64,000 nt of DNA. Source: Hemiscyllium ocellatum (lineage: Eukaryota). The DNA is taken from NCBI RefSeq assembly GCF_020745735.1, contig NC_083413.1:20274001-20338000 (forward strand), in the 5' to 3' direction. Positions within the stretch are counted from its first letter, which is position 1. The number at the start of each line of letters is the position of its first letter. Both the position numbers and the translations under genes were made by a program. Below, one piece after another: positions 3,801 through 58,100 of the stretch. The notes under the pieces are model-generated. The model saw only the letters and a list, made by a program, of their open reading frames with translations. It had not been told where the DNA came from and ran no database searches.

Positions 3801-4920
3801 GAACTTGACTACCAGCCACGGCTCGGCCACGTTTTGTTTTTGCTTGTCCCGAAATCCGCCTTGGAGGTCACCCGAAGGTCCGAAAGTCACGGACCACTGA
3901 AGTGCTCTCCGACTGGAAGTGAACACTCCTGTCTGTTGATTGTTGTGCGGTGTCCATTCATCCGTTGCCCGTATCCTCTGCCGGACCAAACAGAGGCCAC
4001 GGCAATGGATGAATGAAAAAGAACAAGTCGAAGCTACGGTCAATGGATGAATGGACACCACAGAACAATCAACATACATGAGCGCTCCCTCCCAATGGGA
4101 GAATATTTCAGTGGTCTGGGACATTTGACCTCGGATCTTCGGGTGACTATCCTCCAAGGCGGACTTCGGAACAGGCAACAATGAAAAGTGGCTGAGCAGA
4201 CGGTGATAGCCAAGTTCAGTACCCATAAGGATGGCCTCAGAAGGGACCTAGGGTTCATGTCACACTACAGGTGACCTCATCGCACTGTATACACACATAG
4301 ACACACACATTCAGACATACACACACTCTCTCTTCCCTCTCTCTCTCTCACACACACGCACACACTCAAACCCTCTCTCACACACTCACGCATACATTCC
4401 TACGCACACCCTGTCACAGACGTAAACCCCTTCACAACCACACTCACACACGTACACACACTCTCATAGGCACTCATAAACCTTCTCCCCCACCACGGCC
4501 CCACACACACCCACATGCACACGTACACATACATAAGTTTATGGGGTGAATTTGTACTTGCAGAATTACATTTTACTTTGCTCAAAAACTGCATGAATCC
4601 ATGTAAGATTCTGTTAATTCATTTTTTAGTTGGGAATCAGTCTGACCATTGTGGCACAGACAGCCTCACAGGGAGTTAACACCTTCAATACCTTATCTGG
4701 GCCGACAAGACACCAATTGTTAAAGTGCACTTGAGAATGTAACTTTTAAAAACATTTTGCGATTTACATATGACAGAAACAATCTGGATCTTTTTCAATA
4801 TATAACTTCAGTTATATCACACTGTAAACTTTTGTTATAAATTCTGTGCTATAAATGATTCTCCACAATCACCTGATGAAGGAGCAGTGCTCTGAAAGCT
4901 ACTGCTTCCAAATAAACCTG
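838..4920. mobile_element. Cluster of non-autonomous Penelope-like element termini (pLTRs) in alternating orientation, with (CA)n/(TG)n tracts and GIY-YIG C-terminal fragments
   Basis: Repeated unit AAGTTAAAAATCAC..CAACAGGTTTATTTGGAAGC..TTCATCAGG at ~838, ~1356, ~3080 (-) and ending 4920 (+). GIY-YIG tail peptides RQRMNGHR..PVGEHFSGPGH..LIAKF at 1885-2128, 3744-3970 (-) and 4040-4270. Confidence 0.8.
4870..4904 (+). ncRNA. Minimal hammerhead ribozyme motif, family 1 (AGCT palindrome)
   Basis: cac-CTGATGA(4873-4879)-a-GGAGC-agt-GCTCT-GAAA(4894-4897)-GC-TA-ctg: intact catalytic core, 5-bp stem II, imperfect short stem I. Confidence 0.7.
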
Positions 4921-7900
4921 TGAGGCAGTGCCCCCTCAACCATGACCCCACCCCCCATCACCAAGCCATCACCTTCCAGACCATACAGAACCTCATCGCC
5001 TCAGGAGATCTTCCACCCACTGCTTCCAACCTCATAGTCCGGGAACGCCACACTGCCTGGTTCTACCTCCTTCCCAACATCCACAAGCCTGACCACCCTG
5101 GCCGACCCATTGTCTCAGCATGCTCCTGCCCCACTGAACTCATCTCTACCTACCTCAACACTGTCCTATCCCCCCTGGTCCAGGAACTTCACACATACGT
5201 TCGAGACACCAACCACGCCCTCCACCTCCTCCAAAACTTCTGTTTCCCCGGCCCCCAACGCCTCATCTTCACCATGGATATCCAATCCCTCCACACCTCC
5301 ATCCGCCATGACCAAGGCCTCCAAGCCCTCCATTTTTTCCTCTCCAGACGTCCTCAACAGTACCCTTCCACCGATACTCTCATTCATTTGGCCGAACTGG
5401 TCCTCACCCTTAACAATTTCTCCTTTGAATCCTCCCACTTCCTCCAGACCAAAGGGGTAGCCATGGGCACATGTATGGGTCCCAGCTATGCCTGTCTCTT
5501 TGTTGGCTACGGTAGAACAGTTGATCTTCCATAATTACACCGGCACCACTCCCCACCTCTTCCTCCGCTACATTGATGACTGCATTGGTGCCACTTCGTG
5601 CTCCCGCGAGGAGGTTGAGCAATTCATCAACTTCACCAACACATTCCACCCTGATCTTAAATTTACTTGGACCATCTCTGACACCTCCCTCTCCTTCCTG
5701 GACCTCTCCATCTCCATTAATGATGACCAACTTGACACTGACATTTTTTACAAACCCACCAATTCCCACAGCTACCTGGATTACACCTCTTCCCACTCTA
5801 TCTCTTGCAAAAATGCCATCCCATATTCCCAATTTCTCTGCCTCCACCGTATCTGCTCCCAGGAGGACCAATTCCACCAAAGAACACACCAGACGGCCTC
5901 CTTCTTTAGAGACCATAATTTCCCTTCCCACGTGGTTAAAGATGCCCTCCAATGCATTTTGTCCACATCCTGCATCTCTGCCGTCAGACCCCACCCCTCC
6001 AACCGTAACAAGGACAGAACGCCCCGGTGCTCACCTTCCACCCTACAAACCTTTTCATAAACCAAATCATCTGCCGACATTTCCACCACCTCCAAAAAGA
6101 CCCCACCACCAGGGATATATTTCCCTCCCCACCCCTTTCCACCTTCCGCAAAGACAGTTCCCTCCATGACTACCTGATCAGGTCCACGCGCCCCTATGAC
6201 CCACCCTCCCATCCTGGCACCTTCCCCTGCCACTGCAGGAATTGCAAAACCTGTGCCCACACCACCTCCCTCACCTCTATCCAAGGCCCTAAAGGAGCCT
6301 TCCACATCCATCAACGTTTTGCCTGCACATCCACTAATATCATTTATTGTATCCGTTGTTCCCGATGCGGTCTCCTCTACATTGGGGAGACTGGACGCTT
6401 CCTAGCAGAGTGCTTTAGGGAACATCTCCGAGACACCAGCACCAATGAACCACACTGCCCCGTGGCCCAACATTTCAACTCCCCCTCCCACTCCGTCGAG
6501 GAGATGGAGGTCCTGAGCCTCCTTCACCGCTGCTCCCTCATCACCAGACACCTGGAGGAAGAACGCCTCATCTTCCGCCTCGGAACCCGTCAACCCCAGG
6601 GCATCTATGTGAACTTCAACAGCTTCCTCATTTCCCCTTCCCCCATCTCATCCTAATTTCAAACTTCCAGCTCAGCACTGTCCCCATGACTTGTCCAGAC
6701 TTTTCCGACCTGCCTAGCTCCTTTTCCACCTATTCACTCCACCCTCTCCTCCCTGACCTATCACCTTCATCTCCTCCCCCACTCACCCATTGTACTCTAT
6801 GCTACTCTCTCCCCACCCCCACCCTCCCCTAGCTTATCTCTCCATGCTTCCGGCTCACTGCCTTTATTCCTGATGAAGGGCTTTTGCCCGAAATGTCAAT
6901 TTCGCTGCTCGTTGGCTGAACTGCTGTACTCTTCCAGCACCACTGATCCAGAATCAGGTTTCCAGCATCTGCAGTCATTGTTTTCACCTCGTTGATTTTA
7001 ACCCTACTGTGAATCTTCTTGCAAGGATGCCTGCCTTGAAGAAGTTTTCCTCCTCTCTCTACAAGAATCTCAGGGAGTCCCTCTCCCACTGCAACTCCCA
7101 GGTCATTTCCTCTGCCCTGAAGCTCTTCAACCATGTCGTGAAACAAACTTAGTACCACAGCCATATTTGCTTCCTCAGTGCCTGCCTCCGTAACCAACTC
7201 ATCCCACATGGACTCCAAACCACCTTTAAACCAGCAGAGTTCGGACCCGAACAGGGCAAACAGTACAGACTACAGATTCCAAAACACCAGCAACAGTTCT
7301 CTTTCAGGATCCTCCTTTCCACGCTTGAAGCAATGCGCCGGCACCTGACCTCTCTACAGTCAGCATTGCCTCAGCTGAGGGCCACACTCTCTCAGAATTG
7401 CAAAGGATCCATTCTGTACTACATCCTCAGGAGAATTAATACTCTCAACAAACAGTATTTCAATTCCATCTCAAACATCAAAAACTGTAAGTACAACAAA
7501 CTTTTATCCACCCACCTCCATAACCAGCGCTCCTCAAACATTCCAGAAGATTCCCCTGACCTCCGAAACGCAATTAGCCATGCCGCTGATGCAGCTACCA
7601 CCCTCACGCTGATTGATAATGTCACTTCCGCACTCATCATGGCCCCTCCCACAGCCACTTCCGGCCCTCACATCATCGCTTATACCACACGCTCAGTGAC
7701 TTCTGCCAGCCCTACTGCGTGTCTGCCACCACTTCCGCCCGCACTAGCGCCACTCACCTGCATTCTGCTGACACGCCCCCCACAGACCCCACTGTCACTA
7801 CCCCACCCCCCCAAAACCCTGAGGGGAGCACTACCCCTGCTCATGACTCCACCCCCCATTCCCCCCACCATCACATCCACTCTAGGTACTGGCTCTGACC

Positions 7901-8376
7901 CCATTCCCAGCTCCACACCCACAGCAGATCCCAGCTCCCAGCCCTGCTATTTTCACCATCCCTCCAGACCTCTCCCTCACTGAGGACGAAAATCAGTCCT
8001 CAGCATAGGACTCACCTTCATCCCCCTCAGTCCACGTATCAATGAATTTAATATACGCCGTGATGTCGAACAATTCTTCCGTCGCCTCCGCCTCCGACTT
8101 ACTTTCACAATCTGGACACCCGCTCACCTTCCGAGGCCCCCTTCGCCCACCTCCAACACATTGCATCCATCTGGACACCCTGTACTGGCCTATTACCTGC
8201 CCTCGACCTCTTCATTTCCAACTGCCGCCGGGCCATTAACCGCCTCAACCTGTCTACCCCCCCTGCCCCACTCTAACCTCTCACCCTCACAACACGCAGC
8301 CCTCCAATCCCTCTGTTCCAATCCCAACCTCACCATTAAGCCAGCGGATAAAGGGGGCGCAGTGGTAGTCTGTCGC
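4921..8376 (+). mobile_element. Penelope-like retroelement (RT + GIY-YIG endonuclease), frameshifted, circularly permuted
   Basis: RT motifs FYLLP.IHK..PGRPIVS, TMDIQSL, QTKGVAMG, LRYIDD, FLD, FYKPT; Cys/GIY-YIG C..CKTC, YCIRC.RC.LLYIGETG, HFN, LGT.QPQG (to 6656). Then 3'UTR, hammerhead, ATG at 7027 and the N-terminal ORF (HICFLSACLRNQLIPHGL...) ending at KPADKGGAVVV (~8370). Confidence 0.9.
6866..6900 (+). ncRNA. Minimal hammerhead ribozyme motif, family 2 (ACGT-type; here ATGT)
   Basis: attc-CTGATGA(6870-6876)-a-GGGC-tttt-GCCC-GAAA(6890-6893)-TGTC-aat, lying between the PLE 3'UTR and the ATG at 7027. Confidence 0.7.
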
Positions 8377-9010
8377 ACTCAGAATAGGGGAGATGAGACG
8401 GGATCTGATTGAAATATATAAAATAACGAGGGGCATAGATATGGTAGACAGAACGAAGCTTTTTCCTTAATGGAGGAATCGATGATCAAGGGAGTAGATG
8501 TAAGATAAGGGGTAGAAGCTTTAGAGGAGATGCGCGGAAAAATGTCTTTATGCAGCAGTGATGGAATTCTAGGACTGACTGCCTGTTAGCGGGGTTTGGG
8601 CAGAAACCTTCAGAAAATTGAATGAGTATTTAGAAGTGCACTTAACATACCAAGCTATGGGCCAAGTATTAGATAATGTGATTAGAATGTTTAGACGCTT
8701 GCATTTTACCAGCACAGATGTAATGAACTGAAGGACCATTATTTGTGCGTAGACTTCACTAACACTGTGAGTGTCTTCACTCGGAGCGTAGTGAATCTAT
8801 GGGATTATTTACCACAGAGAGTTGTGGAGGTTGCTCTGGAAATAAATTTGAGTATATGAGAGAGTCCGATTTTTAATTAATAAGAGAATCAAGGGCTTTA
8901 GATGAAAGGAATGAATCTGGAGTTGAAGAATATACGAAGTCAAGACCAGATCAATGAGGCGAATGACCTAGGTTTGACCTAATCTTAGTGATGATCATGA
9001 ACATGATTAA
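8377..9010 (+). mobile_element. Old CR1 3'-end fragments shared by paralog upstream regions
   Basis: RRDLIEIYKI.RG.D-type sequence; homologous to 50505-51600 (gene D) and 30530-30900 (gene C). Confidence 0.6.
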
Positions 9011-9094
9011 TGTTTTCTACAATCTTGTTTCTGAATCGAAAATGTTGACGCTCTTGGGATTTAAAAGTTGAAAGTTTAATTTTTAGTGACATCT

Positions 9095-9323
9095 ATCTGC
9101 AGAAATAGCGATCCATTAATTATGATTGTCCTCACAAGTGCAAATGTCCCGTAAACAAATTGATTGAGCATTGTTTCAGCGATGCAATCCATTCGATCAG
9201 ATTTAAGGTGATTCATTGGCTGTAAGGCGCTCTGGGATATCCTCAGGTCCTAACAGGCGCTATATAACTCCACGTTCTTTCTCATTCCGTTTAATCTAGT
9301 GATAGGTTGCTTGCAAGGAAGCG
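9095..9323 (+). promoter_or_regulatory. Proximal promoter of gene B with TATATAA (9261-9267) and homeodomain-like CCATTAATTATGA
   Basis: Block alignable in all three paralogs; TATA 63 nt upstream of ATG, the same spacing as in gene C; ATTGG (reverse CCAAT) at 9215-9219. Confidence 0.65.
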
Positions 9324-9532
9324 ATGACTTTGTTTCTGATATTCCTATTGCTCGCTGTTGTGCCTACGTGGAAATCTCATGGAATGGTTTGTACGCCTCG
9401 AGCAAAAGGCAACTTACCGAATTTGTCTGAAGATGGTGATATTATCCTGGGTGGGATATTTTCAGCACATTTAGATGTGATTTACGATGCTCCTTCATTT
9501 GCCGTCAGTCCATCAGACACGTACTGCGAAAG
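9324..9532 (+). CDS. V2R gene B exon 1 (signal peptide, VFT start)
   Basis: [22 protein letters not shown]..; donor AG|GTAGGT. Confidence 0.92.
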
Positions 9533-12500
9533 GTAGGTCAAACAATCATAGAATCGTGGAATCTCTACATTGCTTAGAAATGTTATTGGACATCTTTGAA
9601 GAGCATTCCACCCAGTCCAAGAACTTGAATTCCTCTCGATTTTCGCCTGTCTAGCCCACCACACTGCACATCCCTAGACAGTACCGGGCAATTTAGCATG
9701 GCCAATCCATCTAACCTAATCTTAGTACAGAGCAGTAAACGATAAAGTAATCCTGATTTCATGCAATCTCGCCGCCCCAATAATGTTCTAAATTCAGTGG
9801 TTAATCATCAATTGCGGTATTCTAACAGTTTTGTCATTGTTCTGAATATGATTACATTCTGGTATTTTGATTGGAATAACTACTTACGCAGAATAATGCC
9901 ATTCTTAGCTGCCTATTTTACCAAGTCGAATTTCAGTTTGATATTGCACACAATGTAAGGACAAAATGGAATCTCAAGAAAAGTCACAAAAGATTCGAAA
10001 CGTTGGCCCTGTTTCTCTCTCCACAGGTTCTCCAGCATTCTTTGTGTTTATGTTTGATTAAGGAAATAATGCTTACTTGTAAGGACATGGAATTGTTGAT
10101 GACTGAAATGGTAATATGGGGGACAGATTCTAAAGGAATCAAATCACTATGTTCAATGATTCGGAAGCATACTGAGTATGAACAAATGAGTATTAATTAG
10201 AAATATTCTCTGAGTTAGTGGTGATGTAACTGGAATTCGTTACACAATATTTTGTGTTTATCTGCAAATCAAATCTGAACAATATTCGGCAAAGGTGTAA
10301 TAATTTGGACAGAATCTAAAACAGAATTTCTAAAGATGGCGATGATAGAAACCTGGGGTTGAGATTTTGCAACAAACTGCAACAAATTGCTGGAGAGATT
10401 AACAAATTTGCAAAACGAGCAAGTAAATGCAATGCCATTGAACACAGTAACGTATGAAGTAGTACATTTAGCTGCGAAAAATAGAGACATCATTGATCAG
10501 TTTGCATGTGCATGTCTATGTAGAGTAGAAGGAGAAAAAGGATCTTGAATTACATGTAGATAGTTCACTGAGTACTTTGTCATCTGTTTGGAATGTGATT
10601 ACTAAAGCAAACCAAAACAAGAAGTTTCATTTCAAACGGGGGAATATTCTGATAAATCTGCATTGAACATTGGTTAGACCGCACTTAGTGCGCAACGTGC
10701 AGTTTTTTTCATCTTCTGGAGAAGCAAGACAGTGAGGATGCTGCAGAGATCATTTACAAAGATGATGCCGAAAATGTGTGAGCCTATATTTCAGAAAGGG
10801 ATTGACCGGCTGGTTTATTTTCCTTGTGGAACTGAAAACTGAATGACCTACAGAAGACTTAATGTGATAAACGGCGTTTAAGTAGTGGATATACAGTGAA
10901 TTTCTCATTTTAAGTGGGAGTATATCACTAGACGCCACCAATTCATTAACATTACCGATATAGATACTCACATTTTGGTCAGGAGCAAAGCAGTGGAAGG
11001 CGCTGTTGAACGTATTTTAAACTACACCTTTAGCTTGCTACTTTGGTGAGGCATTGGACCTTCCTGTCTGTGTGCTCAGTAACATTGGAAGGAATTGGCG
11101 AGGGCCAGTAAGTGAACTCGGATATAGTGGAGTTATGTTTCCTTTGAGGTTATTGGAACAATCCATGAGGGTAAAGAATGCGCAGTTTTCAAGTTTTCTA
11201 CTGGGTACAGTGTATATCTGTTATGTTGTGCGCATTTTGAAGTGTTTAAAATATTTCTAAGCCTTCTAAGGTTCTGACAGTTGTTTGCAAATATTTCCAG
11301 GGATTTCTAATTATTAACAGATATTTTGTGTGCCTCTTGGTATTTGCAGGCATTTGCATGGGTTTATTCATCCAACGATTTAATTACAGCTCAAGCATCT
11401 GTGAATCAGCGAAAAAGCGCAGGGAAGGGTGGGGAATAGATAATCAGCTCTGTTTTTGGGTGGGGTAAGGGAAGTCGGCTGGTGAGCAGATTCGGCGTTG
11501 AATCAGAATGGGATAATGGATGTTGATATTGGTGGGTCAGTAGATGTCAGCGGAGCCCGGATATAAAACGGTCCCATTGTGTTAGTCGTACACCGCACTG
11601 AATACATGCAGAATGCCATGGTAACGAAAGGTATGAATCGGGCGCGACATTGCCAATCAGTTGCAGTGGGTATCAGCATGAAGTTAGGAGTGCCGGGGCT
11701 GATTTGATAGTCCCACTGGCGAGACCCTTTTAAACAATTGTAACCCCGACACGAATCAGGGTATATAGCTGGCCATGAGTCGGACAATAGACCCAAATTT
11801 GTTCATGACATGATCCGTCCGGATCGTGGCCACTGGTTCCCAAGAAGGCCTTTCTGGCAAACCACAAGCTGCAGCATAAGTCGGGTACTTGGAATTTGCG
11901 TTTCCATCACGGATTTCAATTCAGGCGGGCATCTCAGCGGGGCTGGAAGATCTGGATGAATTAGATCTGGATAATTGGATGGTGAATGTATTACGTATAT
12001 CGTTTCCTTTTATATCTCACCCGCAGTTTTGATATCGCAAGCTTTCGCCTGATGCAGACCATGATATTTGCTATCGAAGAAATAAACCGGAGCAAAACTC
12101 TACTTCCGAATATCTCTCTGGGGTATGAGATCTACGATGACTGCTCGATCTCCGCGATAGCGGCCAAAGCAGCGCTGGCTTTGGTGAATGGAGAACAAGA
12201 ACTAATTGAATACCCTGAATGTAAAGGTTCTTCTAATGTGGCAGCCATTCTTGGTTGTGAAACATCCACGTCCTCCATTGCAGCCGCAAGAACGGTTGGA
12301 ACGTTCGGAATTCCAATGGTATCGCGTCTAGTACTTGACTACATATTTGCAACGCCTTTAGAATCATAGTATCTCTGCAGTGCAGGTAGAGGCAATTTGT
12401 ATCATGGATGGGCACTCACCCACCAAAGAGCATTCCATCCCTGTCCCTATCCCAGCATTTATCATGCCTACCACCTAATCCACCAAACCTGCACATCTTT

Positions 12501-15500
12501 AGACTCTAGGTCACCCAACGTCAAATTCGAAACCTGGTCCCTGGTGTCGTGAGGCAGCAGTGCTAACCACTGAGCCACGGTGCCGCCTAAAGTTTCATGA
12601 TGATAGCTTTTTGTTAATCCCAGACTTTTGGAACGCAAATTCTGCTATCTACCATAGCGTATTTTTAAAACCCAAATCCCCACGACCTTGTGTTTTCGTT
12701 TACTCATCTAATGTTATTACCAGTATGCCACCAACTCCCACATACCGTCCGTTTCCTCTTGAAAGCACAGTTACAATGGGTAGTGAAATTACCGTTATTA
12801 GATTAGATTAGACTTACAGTGTGGAAACAGGCCCTTCGGCCCAACAAGTCCACACCGACCCGCCGAAGCGAAACCCATCCATACCCCTACATTTACCCCT
12901 TACCTAACACTACGGGCAATTTAGCATGGCCAATTCACCTGACCCGCACATCTTTGGACTGTGGGAGGAAACCGGAGCACCCGGAGGAAACCCACGCAGA
13001 CACGGGGAGAACGTGCAAACTCCACACAGTCAGTCCACACAGTTATAGGAAAGAACATTTCAGACTCAGACAATCTTTATGATTCCAATAGTACATTCGC
13101 CTGTTTACTTCAGAAATATAGTTCACATGCAATCTCATGTTCTGACCAGCGTAAATTTCAGCTTGCCACTTGTCCTTTCTTTGAAAAACTCGACCAATAA
13201 TTAACTTTGTTCGATTAGTTCCAATCACAGGCGTACATACTTCGTATAGTACTTAATAAAATACATCAACAAATAAAGTACATTCATGCTGAAGATATAA
13301 CAGAGTAACATTTTAAAAACATATTTCAAAAACGACGAATGCATATTTAAATATATTTACTCGTTTTCAGCAGATCAGTTACTTCTCGACTTGCTCCTGT
13401 CTGAGCGATAAACAAGAATACCCGACTTTCTTCAGAACAATACCAAGCGACAAATATCAGTCCAAACTTCTTGCTGAACTCGTGAAAACGTTTGGTTGGA
13501 ATTGGATTGGCACGGTTAGAAGCAACACAGAGTATGGGAATTTTGGGATGAGAACATTTATCGAAGAGGCCCAAAAAATTGGGGTTTGCATCGCGTATTC
13601 TGAATCGTTTTACAGAACCGACCCCGCCGAGAAAATCAGCAAAATAGTGCAGGTGATGAAAGAGGCAACCACAAAGGTTGTGGTTGGATTCTTGCAAAGC
13701 GGCGATATGCGAGTGCTAATTAAGGAGATCTTGCGCCAAAATGTAACGGGGATACAGTGGATTGGAAGCGAAGGATGGCTTACAGAAGACATATTGTTAC
13801 CTGAAGAAAGAGCAAGGGTTCGCGTTGGGGCCATTGGTCCAACGACCCGTAGAACAGAAATAGCCGGCCTCAGAGATCACCTTCTGAAAATTCACCCTTC
13901 TAGGTTTCCTGACAGCATTTTTGTGAAAAAGTTTTGGGAAAATCTCTTCTCGTGCTCTTTAACGACAGGCGACGCGACAGAACCCGGAAGTTCTGCATTT
14001 CATTTGCAGCCATGCACAGGGAATGAACATTTAGATGGTTTAGAAAACGCTTACCTTCCAGCGATAATGGACGGAAGTTCCTACCATGTGTACAAAGCGG
14101 TCTATGCTGTCGCTCATGCACTTGACGATATGCTGTCTTGTGAAGAAGGCTATGGCCCCTTTACGAATAATACGTGTGCTCACATTTCAAGCTTTGAACC
14201 CTGGCAGGTAGGAAAATACTTAATAATGTTTCAGATCGATCCCATAGACGCCATCCACCTTTGAAGTGTGTACTGTTCTATTTCTACTTGAAGTTTTTTC
14301 ATGGCTCTATTTTCACAACCATTATTCCTGTAAGAAAATGAGAGAAAAGCATGCCAAGTGGACAATTCTGCATCAAAAGTAAAAAAAAATGAATATCGTA
14401 AATATTCAAATTTACGCATACACAAATATAGGTAACAAACCTAAATAGATCATTGTAAGGATATCCAAGGCCTGAAGCTCTTCAGGCAGCATAGTATTGA
14501 CTGAAGTGCTTGCGAGGTTTAATCACTATTGTGACGTAGAAAAAGAAAAGCTAAATTATAACAAAGGACATGTCACTAATAATAATGTGATAAATGCTCA
14601 GAATATCGGTGTTAGTTTTGGTGTTGGATGGGTATTTGTGAGCTTCGTCTTTTCGCTGTATTACAGAGCCTTAGTTCTCAGTGGAATGCTATATTTAAAA
14701 CATATCATTCCGACAAATCCGCACTCAGTGGAAGCTAATCTGCATTGTCTAATAAGTCTCAGCGGTGGGCAAGACTCCACATATTCTCAATCAGAGTCAT
14801 TCCTAATATTAGAATCATAAATCCCTACAGCGTGGATGCAGTCTATTTGACCCATCGACTTCCAAGTAGTATCCCAAACAGACACTCCCTACATTATCTC
14901 TATAACCTTGCATTTTCCATAGCTAACCAACTGAGTCTGCATACCCCTCAACACTAAGTGCAATTTAGCATAACCTTGCAAGGAAACTGGAACAAACACA
15001 CGCAGACACGGGAGAATGTGCAAACGCCACACAGACAGGCGCTCGGGTATGGATTCGAACCCGGCTCCCTAGTGCTGTAAGGCAACTGTGCTAACTACTT
15101 AACCACCGAGCCACCATTGATGGAAACATGTGCGACGGAAGATCAGAAACTTGCAAAAACGGAAGATGAATCTCCAAAGTCTATTTGTTCATGGCCGGAT
15201 GCTAATTTGTGATACAATTAATTTCTAAATTATCGGTGTTCATTTGTTTAAATTAATTTTAATGTATGTATCAAAATGACAGCCAAATGCTTATATGTCT
15301 TGCATTGTTCTCCTGCAGCTGCTTCACTACCTGCCCTCAGTAAATTTCACTGCTCACACTGGGGAAATCGTGCATTTTGATGAAAATGGTGATCCAGTCC
15401 CAACATATGACTTAATAAATTTACAAATAAATTTAGAAGGTTCACTTGATATTGTTAAAATTGGATACTATGAAGGGTCATCGCCGGAGGGACAAGAGCT

Positions 15501-31009: not shown

Positions 31010-31238
31010 TCAATGTGCAGAACGAGCGATCCATCAATCACGATTACCTGCATGAATGAAAGTGTGCTGGAAACAACTTGATTGTGCAGTGTCTCAGAGA
31101 CTGAATCTATTTCGCGATTTTATGTGACTCATTGTTGTGAGGCGCTGAGGGATGTCCTCAGGTCGTAAGGGACGCTATATAATATCACGTTCTTCCTTAT
31201 TCAGTTTAACCTAGTGATAGGTTCCTTTCAAGAAAGCA
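31010..31238 (+). promoter_or_regulatory. Proximal promoter of gene C with TATATAA (31176-31182)
   Basis: Aligns to gene B and D promoters; TATA 63 nt upstream of ATG. Confidence 0.65.
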
Positions 31239-31447
31239 ATGACGTTGAATCTGATATTCCTATTGCTAGCTGTTGTGCATACGAAGGTATCATATGGAGT
31301 GATTTGCAAATCTCGAGCAAAGAATGACTTGCCAAATTTGTCTGAAGATGGTGATATAATCCTGGGCGGGATATTTTCAGCACATTTCGATGTGATTCAT
31401 GATGTTCCTTCATTTGCCGTTAGTCCATCGAGCATGTATTGCGAAAG
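31239..31447 (+). CDS. V2R gene C exon 1
   Basis: [21 protein letters not shown]..; donor AG|GTAGGT. Confidence 0.92.
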
Positions 31448-34400
31448 GTAGGTCAAACTGTCATAGAATCGTAGAATATTGGACAAACGAAACACTGGAG
31501 ACACTGCAGAGATGATTTATAGGGCTGATACCGGAAATCACAGTGATAGAATCACAGTTACACAGCACAAAAGTTCCAACCAATCCACGCCTAACGGCGT
31601 GTGGTTTAATATATCAGAAAGGGTTAACCGGCTGTTTCATTTTTCTAGGTAGAAAAAAAAGCTGCGGGCGACCTTACAGACGTCTTTATGCCAGAAAGGG
31701 CTCTAAAAAAGTGGATAGAGAGTGAATGTCTCACTTTATGTGAAAGAACATCACTAAAGACTATTAAGTCTTCAATACTACCAATATGGATACGCACTTC
31801 TTGGTCAGGAGCAAAGGAATGGCATACCCAGTTGAATAATTCAGTTGTAGCTTCTCAGGCTTCTCAACCCTATTGGAAGAATGGTGTGAAACTTGAAAGG
31901 GTTCAGAAAAGATTTACAAGGATGTTACCAGGATTGGAGGATTTAAGCTATTGGGAGAGGTTGAAAAGGCTGGGGCTGTTTTCCCTGGAGCGTCGGAGGC
32001 TGAGGGGTGACCTTATAGAGGTTTATAAAATCATAAAGGGTAAATAGCCAATGTATTTTCCCTGGGATGAGGAAATCCAGAACTAGTGGGCATAGGTTTA
32101 GGTTGAGAGGGGAATGATATAAAAGAGACCTCAGGGGCAACCTTTTCACGCACAGGGTGGTGCGTATATGGAATGAGCTGCCAGAGGAAGTTGTGGAAGG
32201 AGCTACAATTGCAACATTTTAAAAGTTATCTGGATGGGTGAATAAAGTGTTAGGAGGGATATGGGCCGGGTCCTGTCAAGTGGGACTAGATTAGATGGGA
32301 TATCTGGTCGGCATGGACGGGTTGGACGGAAAGGTCTGAGCTGTACATCTCGATGACCCTACAAGTCAAATCGTGAAGGTTGGTGGGGGAGGGTTGGACG
32401 GGGTGTAGAGTTGAGCAACTCTTGCTTTGGAATAGGGTGAAGTGGGGGATCTCGGTTGGCGTGTGTCGTCGGGTTTGATAAATAAAGGAATGCTGGATGT
32501 TGTTCATGTTCGGGTGTTGGTGTTAGTGCAGCCCGGAAGTTGACCGGATTCCAGTGTGTCGGAGAAGCATGGGTCTGCAGCCTTGTCGATTAGTTGACGT
32601 TGAAGTCATCTGTGCTTGGGGCTACCCTGGCTGGTTTGACACTACCGGTGACGACAAGACTTGTAATCACTACATGAATCAGGGCAAATAGCGGAGCATG
32701 TGGCGGGTAACCCGCTCACCAAAATTACCCGTCGGGTTCGAGATCATGGGTTCCCAAGAACCTCTTTCCGGTAAACTGCAAGTTCCTGCCTAAATCTGTT
32801 GGTCAGAATTTTTGTTTCTATTGTGATTCTCAATTGAGTTGAGGTAGGGGCAGGGGAGGGGGAGGGGGAGGGGGCTGGTGCGGCGTGTCTGGAATATCTG
32901 GGTGAAAGTCATCTACAAAGTTGGATGTTGAATTAAATATGCACATAATTTCCTTTCTCATCTCACCATGCAGTTTTGACATCTCAAGCTTTCGCCTGAT
33001 GCAGACCATGATTTTTGCTATTGAAGAAATAAACCGGAGCAAAACTCTACTTCCGAATATCACTCTGGGATATGAGATCTACGATGACTGCTCAATCTCC
33101 GCGATAACGTCGAAAGCAGCGCTAGTCTTGGTGAATGGAGAAGAAGAACTAATTGAGTACCCGGATTGTAAAGGTTCTTCCAATGTTGCAGCCATTATTG
33201 GCTGTGATATATCCACCTCATCCATTACAGCCGCAAGGACAGTTGGAGCGTTCGGAATTCCACTGGTAATATTTCAAGTATTTGACTGCACTTTTACAGT
33301 GCCCTTAGGATCGTGGCCCGACAGTGTGAATAGATGCCAGTTGGAGCCTGGAGTGAAGGGTGACGCTGACACTCCGAAGAGCATTCCTCCATGTCCCAGC
33401 ATTTATAGCGCCGACCACCTAGCATGCAGAGACCTGGATAGTACGGGGCAATTTAGCATTACTAATCCACCTGACAGCGCATCTTTCAATTGATGGAGGA
33501 CAGCAAAGCAACTGGAGTAAACTCACAACGACATGGGGAGGACGCGCAAACCAGTCACCCAACTGTGTCATCGAAACCGGTTCCCTAGCACAGTGATGCA
33601 GCAGTGCTAACCACTGAGCTTCCGTGCCACCCAAAATGTAACCAGGGTAGCTTTTTTTGTGTATTCCTGATTTTATTTAATTCAAATATTATTATTTGCT
33701 ATAGTGGGATTTGTGGATATCACGCATATCTATTGTATATCCCCAGAATCAATTTCTGTGGATTGCTTATCTCCGGATATTAGATCCATGCCGCAATCTC
33801 CTGCGTTTGGTTTATGAGCGCACTGCCACAACGTGTAGCGACACTGCAGTCAGAGGAATAGAGGTTATTTCAGACTATCTTAAATATACTAGTAGAAAAG
33901 TCCATTGCCAGAACGCTGAAGGAAGATCGTTCCCACGCAACCACGGTGTTGATGATTGTAAATTTCAGCTTCTCATTTGCTGTTTTACCAACTCTGCAAA
34001 GGATTTATTTTGTTTGATTACTTCCAACAATCGGTGGTAAGATTTGATATTGCGGTAATGTGCAAACATAAAATTCATTCATAATGAAAATCTTGACGAG
34101 TGTTTCAAAAATATCCAAATGCAGGGAAGGAATGTCTTCATATTTTCACTCTTTTCGTTGCAGATCAGTTACTTCTCGACTTGCTCCTGTCTGAGCGATA
34201 AACAAGAATACCCGACTTTCTTCAGAACGATACCAAGCGACAAATATCAGTCCAAACTTCTCGCTGAACTTGTGAAAACATTCGGCTGGAATTGGATTGG
34301 GACGGTTAGAAGTAACACAGATTATGGGAATTTTGGGATGAGAACATTTGTTAAAGAGGCTCAAAAATTAGGGATTTGCATCGCGTACTCGGAATCGTTT

Positions 34401-51694: not shown

Positions 51695-51922
51695 TTTGCA
51701 GAAATAGCGATTCATTAATTACGAACGGCCGCATGACTGAAAATTCCTCATTAACAAGTTGAGTGAGCAATGTCTCAGAGATGTAGGCTATTTGATCAGG
51801 TTAAGATGGCTTGTTAGCTGTGAGGCGCTGTGGGATGTCCTCGGGTTATAACAGTCCCTTTATAACTTCACCTTTTTTTTCTCATTTCGTTAATCTAGTG
51901 ATAGGTTCTTTGCAAGAGCGCC
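51695..51922 (+). promoter_or_regulatory. Proximal promoter of gene D with TTTATAA (51859-51865) and TCATTAATTA
   Basis: Aligns to gene B and C promoters. Confidence 0.6.
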
Positions 51923-52131
51923 ATGATTTTGTTTCCGATATTCCTATTGCTAGCTGTTGTGTCTACGCAGCAATCACCTGGAATGGTTTGTAAGTCTCGA
52001 GGAAAAGGTGACTTGCCTAATTTGTCTGAAGATGGAGATATTATCGTGGGCGGGATATTTGCAGCACATTTAGACGTGATTCATGATATTCCCTCATTTG
52101 CCGTCAGTCCGTCAGACACGCATTGCGAAAG
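51923..52131 (+). CDS. V2R gene D exon 1
   Basis: [21 protein letters not shown]..; donor AG|GTAGGT. Confidence 0.92.
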
Positions 52132-55100: not shown

Positions 55101-58100
55101 CAAATAAAGACCATTTGAACCATGGAGTGGGAACAGCCTCTCCTAAGAGCATTCCATTCCCATCCTGACATTTATTACGTCTACCACCTTGCCAGCGCAT
55201 ACCTGGACGCTATGGGCCATTTTGCATGGTCAATCCACATAAGCTGCACATCTTTTGACTGTAGGAGGAGACGGAAGCCCCCAAAATAAATCCTCGCAGA
55301 CACGTGGAGAATGCATATCCTTCACATAGTCAGTCGCCCAAAGGCGAAATGGACACCCGGTCTCTGGATCGGTGAGGCAGCAATGCGAACCTGATTCTCC
55401 GTGCTGCCAAAAATTTTGTCTTTTTTTTTGCTTATTGCAGGCATTATTGAATTCAAATATTGCTGTCTATAATAGCGGGATTTAAACCCAAATCCCCACA
55501 ATCATATGCTTTGGTTTACTTATGCAATGATATTACCATTATGCTACTACCCCAACATACCACTCATTTTCTCGTGAGTGTACAGTTACAACATGTAGCG
55601 AAATTGTCATCATAAAAAGAAAGGTTATTTCAGACTCAGGCCATCTTTTAAATTCCAGTAGAATATTCAACACGTTCCTTCAGGACGATAGTTCTCATGC
55701 AACCACAGTGCTAACCAATGCAAAATTCAGTGCGCCACGTCTTTTTTTTAAACTCGATTTACGATTTACTTTGTGTGATCATTTCCATTCATAGGCATTT
55801 GTGTTTGATACTGCACTTGATGAAATTCATAATTAAGAAAAATACATTCATATTGAAGGTAAAGGAGTGAAGCTTTTCAGAATTAATTCCAAAAAACCAA
55901 TGAAAGCATATTTGCATATATTTTCCCGTTTTCTGCAGATTAGTTATTTCGCCACTTGCTCTTGCCTGAGCGATAAGCAAGAATACCCGACTTTCTTTAG
56001 AACGATACCAAGCGACAAATATCAGTCCAAACTTCTCGCTGAACTCGTGAAAACCTTTGGTTGGAATTGGATTGGCGCGGTTAGAAGCAACACAGATTAT
56101 GGGAACTTTGGGATGAGAACATTTATCGAAGAGGCCCAGAAAATTGGGGTTTGCATCGCATATTCTGAATCGTTCTACAGAACCGATCCTGCTGAGAAAA
56201 TCAGCAAAATAGTGCAGGTGATGAAAGAAGCGACCACAAAGGTTGTGGTTGGATTCTTGCAAAAAAGAGATATGCGAGTGTTAATTGAGGAGATTTTGCG
56301 CCAAAATGTGACGGGTATACAGTGGATTGGAACTGAAGGATGGCTTACAGGAGATACATTGTTCACTGAAGAAAGAGCAAGGGCTCGCGTTGGGGCCATT
56401 GGTCCAACGACCCGAAGGACAGAAATAGCCGGCCTCAGAGATCATCTTCTGAAAATTCATCCTACTAGGTTTCCTGACAGCACTTTTGTGAAGGAGTTTT
56501 GGGAAAATCTCTTCTCATGCTCTTTAACCACGGGCGATACGACAGACCCCCGAAGTTCTGCATTTCAAGTGCGGCCATGCACGGGAAATGAACATTTAGA
56601 TGGGTTAGAAAATACCTATCTTCCAGCGATCATGGACGGAAGTTCCTACCATGTATACAAAGCGGTCTACGCTGTCGCTCATGCACTTGACGATATGCTG
56701 TCTTGTGAAGAAAACAATGGCCCTTTTATGAATAGCACTTGTGCTCATACTTCAAGCTTTGAACCCTGGCAGGTAGGAAAATATTTCATTTTGTTTCATC
56801 ATCTTTGAAGTTTTATTTCCGCTTGTGTCTTTTTTCAGAGCTCCATTTCAACAACAAATTTCCTCTCGGAGATTGAGAGAAAAGCGTGCCAATATGTTAC
56901 TCGTGTATCAAAATGAGAATGAAATATACCAAATACTGCAAAATCAAGCACACAATAGGTGAAGAACAAACATAAATCCATTATTGCAATGATCAGACTG
57001 GTCTACACCTCTTCAGCAGCCTCTTATCGACTGTGACGTGCTTGAGAGGGTTATTCATTGCTGTGAAGTTTGAAATAGAAAAGCTAAATTGTAGCCAATG
57101 ATATGCCAATAATAACAATGTGATAAATGTTCCCAATATCGATGTCAGTCATTGTTGTTGATGACTATTGACGAGATTCGTCTTTTCACTTTATTATAGC
57201 GCCTTAGTTCTCTGTGAATGTTTAATTTAAAACATGTTTCTCCGGCAATTCAGCACACATTGCAAATTATACTGCACTATCAGTCAAAACTCAGTTGTAG
57301 TTCTAAACTCATAGAGGCTCAAGGAGATGTATAGCAGAGAAACAGGCCCTTAGGTCCAACTCGTCCATGGCGACCAGATATCCTAACCTCATCCACTTCC
57401 ATTTGCCAGCACTTGGCCCATGAAGCCCTAAACCCTTCCTGTTCCTATACACATCCAGATGTCTATTAGATGTTGCAACTGTACCAGTCTCCACCACTTC
57501 CTCTGGCAGTTCACGGCACCCCATTCCATTCAGGCACCACCCTCTGCATGGAAAAGTTACCACAAGGTCCCTTTTAATTTTCCCCCTCTCACTCTAAATC
57601 CATTCCCTCGAATTCTGGACTCGCCCGCTCCAGAGAAAAGACCTTGCTTATTTACCCTATCCACACCCCTCAGGATTTTATCAACCTCGACAAGGTCACC
57701 CTCCAGCCTCCAACTCTCGAGGGAAAATAGCCCCAGCCTGTTCAACTACTCCCTGGAGCAGCATCCTTGTAAATCTGTTCTGAACCCTTTCATGTTTCAC
57801 AACATCCTAACCAATGTCCTGTACAGCCGTAACATGACTTCCCAATTCCAAGACTCAGTGCGCTGTCCACTAAAGAAAAGCGTACCAAAAGCTCTTTTCG
57901 CTATCCTGTCTACTTGCGAAGCCCCTTTCAAGGAACAATTAACCTGCACTCAAAGGTTCACATATTCTCAATTAGAATCATTGGGACTAATAAAAAGATT
58001 TGAATGTCAGACAGATGTTCCGAAACTTGCAAAAAAATGGCAGGTAGTGATCTCCAAGCCTTATTTATTCTTTTCCGGATGCTGATTTGTGATATCATTA

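Follow-up and report, generated by a model that had tools for sequence, protein, structure and literature searches.

An interspersed-repeat tail at the putative core promoter of a V2R receptor subfamily in sharks

Promoters derived from transposable elements are a well-known category, and the Pol II promoters of this kind known in mammals include start sites derived from LTR, MIR/L2, Alu and B2 elements; the V2R genes described here add a probable example. The 3′ tails of L2-clade LINEs also mobilise SINEs, among them SacSINE1, LmeSINE1, AmnSINE1 and the CmiSINEs, which have an L2-2_CM tail. L2-type SINE tails fold into conserved stem-loops, the tails of bivalves and lizards being ~72% identical, and tails of this type are conserved across phyla within Metazoa (PMC4824008). 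SacSINE1, a Deu SINE that combines a tRNA head with an L2-2-type tail, is reported from the whale shark as well as from skate and chimaera (PMC5499810, PMC2746220), and the whale shark, a host of this element, belongs to the same order as Hemiscyllium ocellatum (PMC5499810). Relics of AmnSINE1/Deu-SINEs have been exapted as enhancers, namely AS071 of Fgf8 and AS021 of Satb2 (PMC3427154, PMC3234267). V2Rs are the main olfactory receptors in sharks (PMC6368271, PMC10116579), and no description of the V2R promoters of sharks was found in the literature searched.

The relic that we describe upstream of a group of shark V2R genes resembles the mammalian transposon-derived promoters in that a fragment of a mobile element occupies the core promoter position and supplies a TATA box, which in the V2R genes is putative. 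It differs from them in three respects: the donated part comes from the 3′ end of a non-LTR retroposon, being its tail and not its own promoter; it was received by an entire shark chemoreceptor subfamily that has expanded in tandem; and the start site is a predicted one. With AS071 and AS021 it shares an ancient SINE-family relic near a gene and a presumed cis-regulatory role, but these two are distal enhancers from the Deu core, whereas the V2R relic is a proximal TATA element from the tail. Likewise, a match to the 3′ terminus of a repeat, a two-arm stem-loop and short terminal repeats are shared with L2 tails and with SacSINE1, LmeSINE1, AmnSINE1 and the CmiSINEs, although the V2R relic comprises the last ~80 nt only, with a Deu domain and a tRNA or 5S head undetectable. 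The locus would extend the theme of transposon-derived promoters to a reverse transcriptase-recognition tail as the donor, to an early-branching vertebrate lineage and to a chemoreceptor family as the recipient, one in which one-receptor-per-neuron expression depends on promoter architecture.

The window, by which we mean the whole stretch of 64,000 nt of H. ocellatum DNA that was analysed, contains three tandem V2R/CaSR-like genes (B, C and D) at a spacing of ~21–22 kb, with exon 1 starting at 9324, 31239 and 51923, respectively. Translations of the exons match ANF_receptor/7tm_3 proteins, the nearest of which are from Chiloscyllium punctatum (83%) and H. ocellatum (91%), and the third exon of the gene neighbouring B matches V2R/CaSR-like proteins with an ANF_receptor domain. 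In gene B, a GTAGGT splice donor is located ~3 bases before the end of the exon 1 span given in Table 1. For comparison, we used three loci of the bamboo shark C. punctatum: L003, which is the orthologue of B and is 96% identical to it; L001, which holds three further paralogous units of promoter plus exon 1 (a, b and c); and L002 (BEZZ01000422, reversed), which contains a more divergent V2R gene. A query with the exon 1 peptide, meant to widen the promoter survey, returned zero candidates. Within the window, positions 4001–8000 exhibit a strongly negative GC skew (−0.38 to −0.46) and a raised GC content.

Table 1 Features of the V2R promoter region and related copies. Positions are those of the window unless a bamboo-shark locus is named.
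Feature	Position	Strand	Remarks
Upstream motif TGCAGAAATAGCGATCCATTAATTA	9098..9122	+	Aligned in C and D too; outside the relic
Relic, 5′ part, gene B (GGGATATCC)	9212..9249	+	Inverted CCAAT, first GCGC arm, inner palindrome
Relic, 3′ part, gene B (CACGTTCTTTCTCATTCC)	9250..9290	+	Second GCGC arm, TATATAA, pyrimidine-rich remnant of terminal short repeats
Putative TATA box, gene B (TATATAA)	9261..9267	+	63 nt before the ATG at 9324
Putative initiator-like element (TTAATCT)	9291..9297	+	Sequence-based; fits YYANWYY; A at 9293 is the predicted transcription start
Leader between relic and ATG (TTTAATCTAGTGATAGGTT...)	9291..9323	+	Conserved, 33 nt; 81% mean pairwise identity in five paralogues
Exon 1, gene B	9324..9533	+	Encodes the signal peptide and the first part of the ligand-binding domain
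Relic, gene C	31128..31205	+	Same relic as in gene B
TATATAA, gene C	31176–31182		63 nt before the ATG at 31239
Relic, gene D	51810..51889	+	Same relic, more decayed
TTTATAA, gene D	51859–51865		64 nt before the ATG at 51923
Exon 1 copy, bamboo shark, L001b	L001:19525-19958		Apparently dead
Exon 1 copy, bamboo shark, L001c	L001:35031-35489		Apparently dead

The block upstream of the V2R genes has the layout of a retroposon tail, with a GCGC arm, an inner hairpin, a second GCGC arm, TATATAAAT and then short pyrimidine repeats, of which a remnant lies at 9273–9287 in block B. When folded, block B forms an outer GCGC stem around the inner hairpin (−18.8 kcal/mol). An earlier, sequence-only reading of this DNA had quoted strings of the block, and these are present in B, C and D; the coordinates also agree with the distance of exactly 63 nt that it gave between TATATAA and the start codon of genes B and C, and the variant that it assigned to gene D is a box weaker than TATATAA, TTTATAA at −64. 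The reverse CCAAT that it had pointed out in gene B is likewise present (ATTGG at 9215–9219; CAGCCAATGA on the other strand), within the stretch that is homologous to the repeat. It was rejected as a promoter element under conservation, since B alone has it intact, and this lack of conservation among the paralogues suggests that it is probably not essential.

The same reading had described an alignable block that ends ~40 nt before the ATG. Such a block is present in all three genes, but it is not a discrete unit, because the alignment of B, C and D is unbroken at 75–79% identity, beginning at least 250 nt upstream and including exon 1 (BLAST, MAFFT), so that the block forms no separate homology island; between B and D, the continuous alignment reaches ~800 nt upstream. 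Besides those of B, C and D, no copies of the block were found elsewhere in the 64-kb window. The two-motif pattern of the tail occurs three times in the window against 0.26 occurrences expected by chance, and since these three copies are paralogous, they count as one event.

The block was found in B, C, D, L003, L001a and L001c. Two of the bamboo-shark exon 1 copies appear to be dead: in L001b, the block is partly deleted, the TATA element is absent and exon 1 has an in-frame stop, and in L001c, the ATG is changed to AAG and a frameshift is present, with the TATA element kept. Because the paralogues of both species, apart from the divergent L002, share the relic, the insertion occurred before the tandem duplications that expanded the cluster, as had been proposed from the window by itself, and it is older than the Hemiscyllium/Chiloscyllium split as well. 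In all five intact genes (B, C, D, L001a and L002) and in the B orthologue L003, the distance from a TATA-like element to the ATG is 62 to 64 nt; among the paralogues examined, only the pseudogene L001b is without it. Upstream of the L002 gene, the sequence is unalignable and the block undetectable, and a CCAAT is present together with TATATAG 62 nt before the ATG (L002:9920-9945). A TATA element at −62 without the block implies either that the TATA predates the SINE-like flanks or that the flanks have eroded in L002, and the TATA might thus be older than the insertion.

To relate the block to sequences elsewhere in shark genomes, Logan DNA contigs were compared with positions 9000–9599 at a likeness of at least 80% in four runs, comprising two epaulette-shark samples and two related species. 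Each of the four runs (three species) contained 10–22 separate contigs that match only from 9211/9212 to 9247/9249 (38 nt, 6–7 mismatches) and then diverge from the window, the share running on unlike being 0.84–0.97. The other contigs on 9000–9599 correspond to the locus itself and to a few V2R paralogue contigs covering exon 1. Several of the repeat contigs continue for hundreds of bases past the match, and none of these aligns to V2R exon 1, indicating that they are dispersed repeat copies and not V2R promoters or genes. After 9248, the consensus of the repeat contigs reads TGTGAAAGATGCTATATAAAT(N)CAAAT; taken separately, the continuation is TGTGAAAGATGCTATATAAATTCAAAT (organism B) or TGTGAAAGATACTATATAAATACAAAT (organism C), where the window reads CCTAACAGGCGCTATATAACTCCACG. 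CTATATAAAT of the repeat and the TATA of the V2R genes are in register, 19 of 30 positions being identical to 9249–9278, and the CTATATAA of the repeat family is aligned exactly with the V2R TATA box; CpG decay of GGCGC would give the differences seen around CTATATAA. The window and the repeat consensus (…CCTACACTTCAAAAGTAC) are no longer alike upstream of 9212, and the V2R copy is therefore either 5′-truncated near 9205–9212 or diverged upstream.

This comparison was free of any motif assumption, and we take it as the main evidence for a repeat origin of the block. The earlier proposal that a retroposon tail was the source of the TATA block is supported in that an interspersed repeat of three species has a 3′ end collinear with positions 9212 to ~9290 and the position of the TATA is conserved. 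No complete shark copy of the repeat was present in ~150 kb of local shark DNA, which contained just one degenerate free tail copy at L002:16170-16245 (gaagcgccttgtgg...gacgctttataaatgtgcgttgttgttg); this copy lies in a bamboo-shark V2R intron or in intergenic sequence and ends in (GTT)n, not in a pyrimidine repeat. Other retroelements are also visible in the window: a common shark SINE with a tRNA-like head (GGCACGG.AGCTCAGTGGTTAGCACTG...), unrelated to the promoter relic, is located at 33400–33640 (−) and 12552–12622 (−), and a typical shark LINE 3′ end (…GGCCAAGTGCTGGCAAATGGAAGTGGATGAGGTTAGGATATCTGGTCGCCATGGACGAGTTGGACCTAAGGGCCTGTTTC…) is located at 57300–57550 (−).

A scan of metagenomes with the two-part motif yielded >120 contigs from host-associated projects (L004-L123; Ga0056xxx, Ga0209xxx, Ga0049107). 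These contigs carry a high-copy SINE of ~360 nt, often 5′-truncated, with a box-A-like head (TGGCACAGTGGTAGAAC), a central GGGGTCGATAAATGAGTA segment and a uniform 3′ end (…CTGAGCGCCTTGAG, ~20 nt, GGCGCTATATAAA, TCCACTTCCTTT(ACCTTT)n) that is followed by unique flanks. The order within the tail is GCGCYTTGAG, ~20 nt, GGCGCTATATAAAT and TCCACTTCCTTT repeats, ending in (CCTTT)n or (ACCTTT)n, and the motif pair is a genuine SINE tail. The host of this SINE is probably an invertebrate. ARAGORN found no tRNA in the SINE and Rfam found none in the heads at the gathering score; no LINE partner was recognised among the metagenome contigs, the ORFs of L042 being without an RT domain, and a scan of IMG/VR for the shark-type pattern gave 0 matches.

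The V2R relic and the metagenome SINE exhibit the same tail layout and motif order and align without gaps over ~63–65 nt, but the host is another, the body is unrelated and the identity of the tails is just ~65–70%. In the SINE tails, the two motifs pair with each other (AGCGCYUU/AAGGCGCU) to give an outer stem that encloses an inner hairpin of variable sequence, and block B folds likewise. Past its TATA, the V2R block reads CTCCACGTTCTTTC / CTCCACGTTCTTTCTCATTCC, with the likeness running on into the TCCAC..TTC.TTT tail, and the resemblance thus exceeds the pattern that was used for fishing. When both strands of 307 kb of shark DNA were searched by nhmmer with a profile of the full SINE, the B block ranked first (E 2.4e-4) and its bamboo-shark orthologue second (5.4e-4), with 9226–9290 aligned without gaps to the last 65 positions of the profile, and in the reverse search a profile of the six V2R blocks aligned to the SINE tails across both motifs (best E 4e-7); because the SINE copies were picked by the pattern of both motifs, these E-values are partly circular and count as supporting evidence only.

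The likeness could in principle reflect chance or convergence, since an ordinary TATA promoter and such a tail both consist of a GC-rich palindrome followed by TATATAA; the profile E-values, which are only ~1e-3 to 1e-4 and partly circular, leave room for this, as does L002, in which a TATA lies at an equal distance amid unrelated flanks. However, the motif-free contig test found tens of unrelated contigs in three species with the same 38-nt end points and CTATATAA in register, an 8-mer falls in a fixed register by chance at ~1.5e-5, and the likeness extends past the TATA into the TCCAC..TTC.TTT tail, which together make a coincidence very improbable.

With regard to the class of the element, "L2-type retroposon tail" appears to be the best-supported name, given by layout. 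The block has a stem-loop with two complementary arms and, behind it, short terminal tandem repeats, which is one mark of a 'stringent' L2-type tail, and the name is preferred because neither a Deu body nor a Pol III head could be recognised at the locus. The label "Deu-SINE" refers to a presumed resemblance of the block to the tail of Deu-domain SINEs (AmnSINE1/SacSINE1 type), and the L2/Deu identity of the relic is a putative one. Searches for a Pol III head gave 0 genes with ARAGORN in the window and no tRNA or 5S match with Rfam, and Rfam returned nothing relevant, including no UnaL2-type element, for the block (E up to 10) and for the whole window. A missing tRNA or 5S head is expected if the copy is 5′-truncated, and its absence is thus compatible with a SINE origin; upstream of 9212, no match to the body of the metagenome SINE was found, and ahead of 9211 the repeat contigs no longer resemble the window. 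In the full-text literature, the sole matches to the tail sequence were salamander microsatellite primers containing GCGCTATATAAATCC beside (ATAC)n; the two primers (AGGTTCGCGCTATATAAATCC, TCGCACTTTATAAATCCCAACAC) adjoin (ATAC)n/(TACA)n repeats (PMC3002275), which anecdotally suggests that in vertebrates the motif is found ahead of microsatellites and that amphibian genomes have the same layout of tail plus microsatellite.

Collinearity alone gives, in principle, no direction, and a genomic repeat family could have taken up a fragment of a V2R promoter; nothing direct speaks for this. Against it, the tail layout recurs in a SINE whose host is unrelated, and the conservation of L2-type tails throughout Metazoa (PMC4824008) greatly exceeds the range of the V2R subfamily. 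We consider a transfer from the V2R promoter to the repeat family extremely improbable.

In Pol II core promoters, a spacing of 25–35 nt between the TATA box and the initiator is canonical. In gene B, the A of the initiator-like element (−31 relative to the ATG) lies 32 nt past the first T of the TATA. The motif TTAATCT is present in B, D, L003 and L001c, and gene C has TTAACCT and no strict initiator; TATATAA and TTAATCT occur together at the 32-nt spacing in B, L003 and L001c, and D combines TTTATAA with the same initiator. Among the sequencing runs recorded as RNA, none contained the 5′ region or the body of the gene. A promoter role is favoured because the position of the TATA is conserved even where the flanks are unalignable, the spacing to the initiator is canonical and the leader is as conserved as coding sequence. 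On these sequence features, the TATA box most likely serves as the core promoter, which yields a concrete prediction of the start site in gene B, at ~9293.

Other chemoreceptor genes commonly have a non-coding exon further upstream, and as the main alternative the relic could lie outside the promoter altogether, with transcripts beginning at an upstream non-coding exon, the pyrimidine tail and the AG at 9298–9299 (TTCTTTCTCATTCCGTTTAATCTAG|TG) acting as a 3′ splice site, the TATA being intronic and the leader being the start of the coding exon. The pyrimidine tract and the AG are located exactly where the conservation among the paralogues rises to 81%, as this arrangement would have it. In contrast, the intact paralogue L001a has CG in place of the AG, L002 is without a pyrimidine tract before the ATG and yet has a TATA at −62, and the purines at −6 and −7 together with T at +1 would make a weak acceptor; the 32-nt spacing from the TATA to the initiator is that of a core promoter. 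A splice acceptor at this position is therefore unlikely.

We consider it fairly probable that an L2-type retroposon tail was inserted before the V2R duplications and that its TATA is now the core promoter of the subfamily. An L2-type retroposon, either a SINE or a 5′-truncated LINE copy, would have landed in the sense direction immediately upstream of the subfamily's ancestor, leaving the last ~80 nt of the element still recognisable, and tandem duplications would then have given rise to B, C, D and their bamboo-shark counterparts. In the inserted tail, two GCGC arms would have formed an RNA stem-loop, with TATATAAAT and then short pyrimidine repeats behind it, and a consensus TATA box would thus already have been present in the element. 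This TATA most likely nucleates the assembly of TFIID and Pol II, which would produce transcripts with a 5′ leader of ~31 nt. The mean pairwise identity across five paralogues is 56–67% upstream of the block, 70–71% in the block and 81% both in the leader and in exon 1; that the block is just slightly better conserved than the upstream sequence and falls below the leader counts against this explanation, as do the weaker box of gene D and the TATA of L002 at an equal distance in the absence of the block.

More tentatively, the L2-type tail could be a ready-made Pol II cassette, in which an NF-Y-type inverted CCAAT ~45 nt before the TATA is combined with a pyrimidine-rich start region, such that one insertion founded the promoter of the subfamily and the repeat family has seeded promoters repeatedly across shark genomes; we regard this broader scenario as rather doubtful. 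Outside the relic, all V2R paralogues share the motif TGCAGAAATAGCGATCCATTAATTA, which has a homeodomain-type TAATTA at its core and lies ~160 nt before the TATA. In the DNA contig comparison, the bin 9100–9119 was covered by extra paralogue contigs, and TGCAGAAATAGCGATCCATTAATTA is a possible candidate for a proximal regulatory site.
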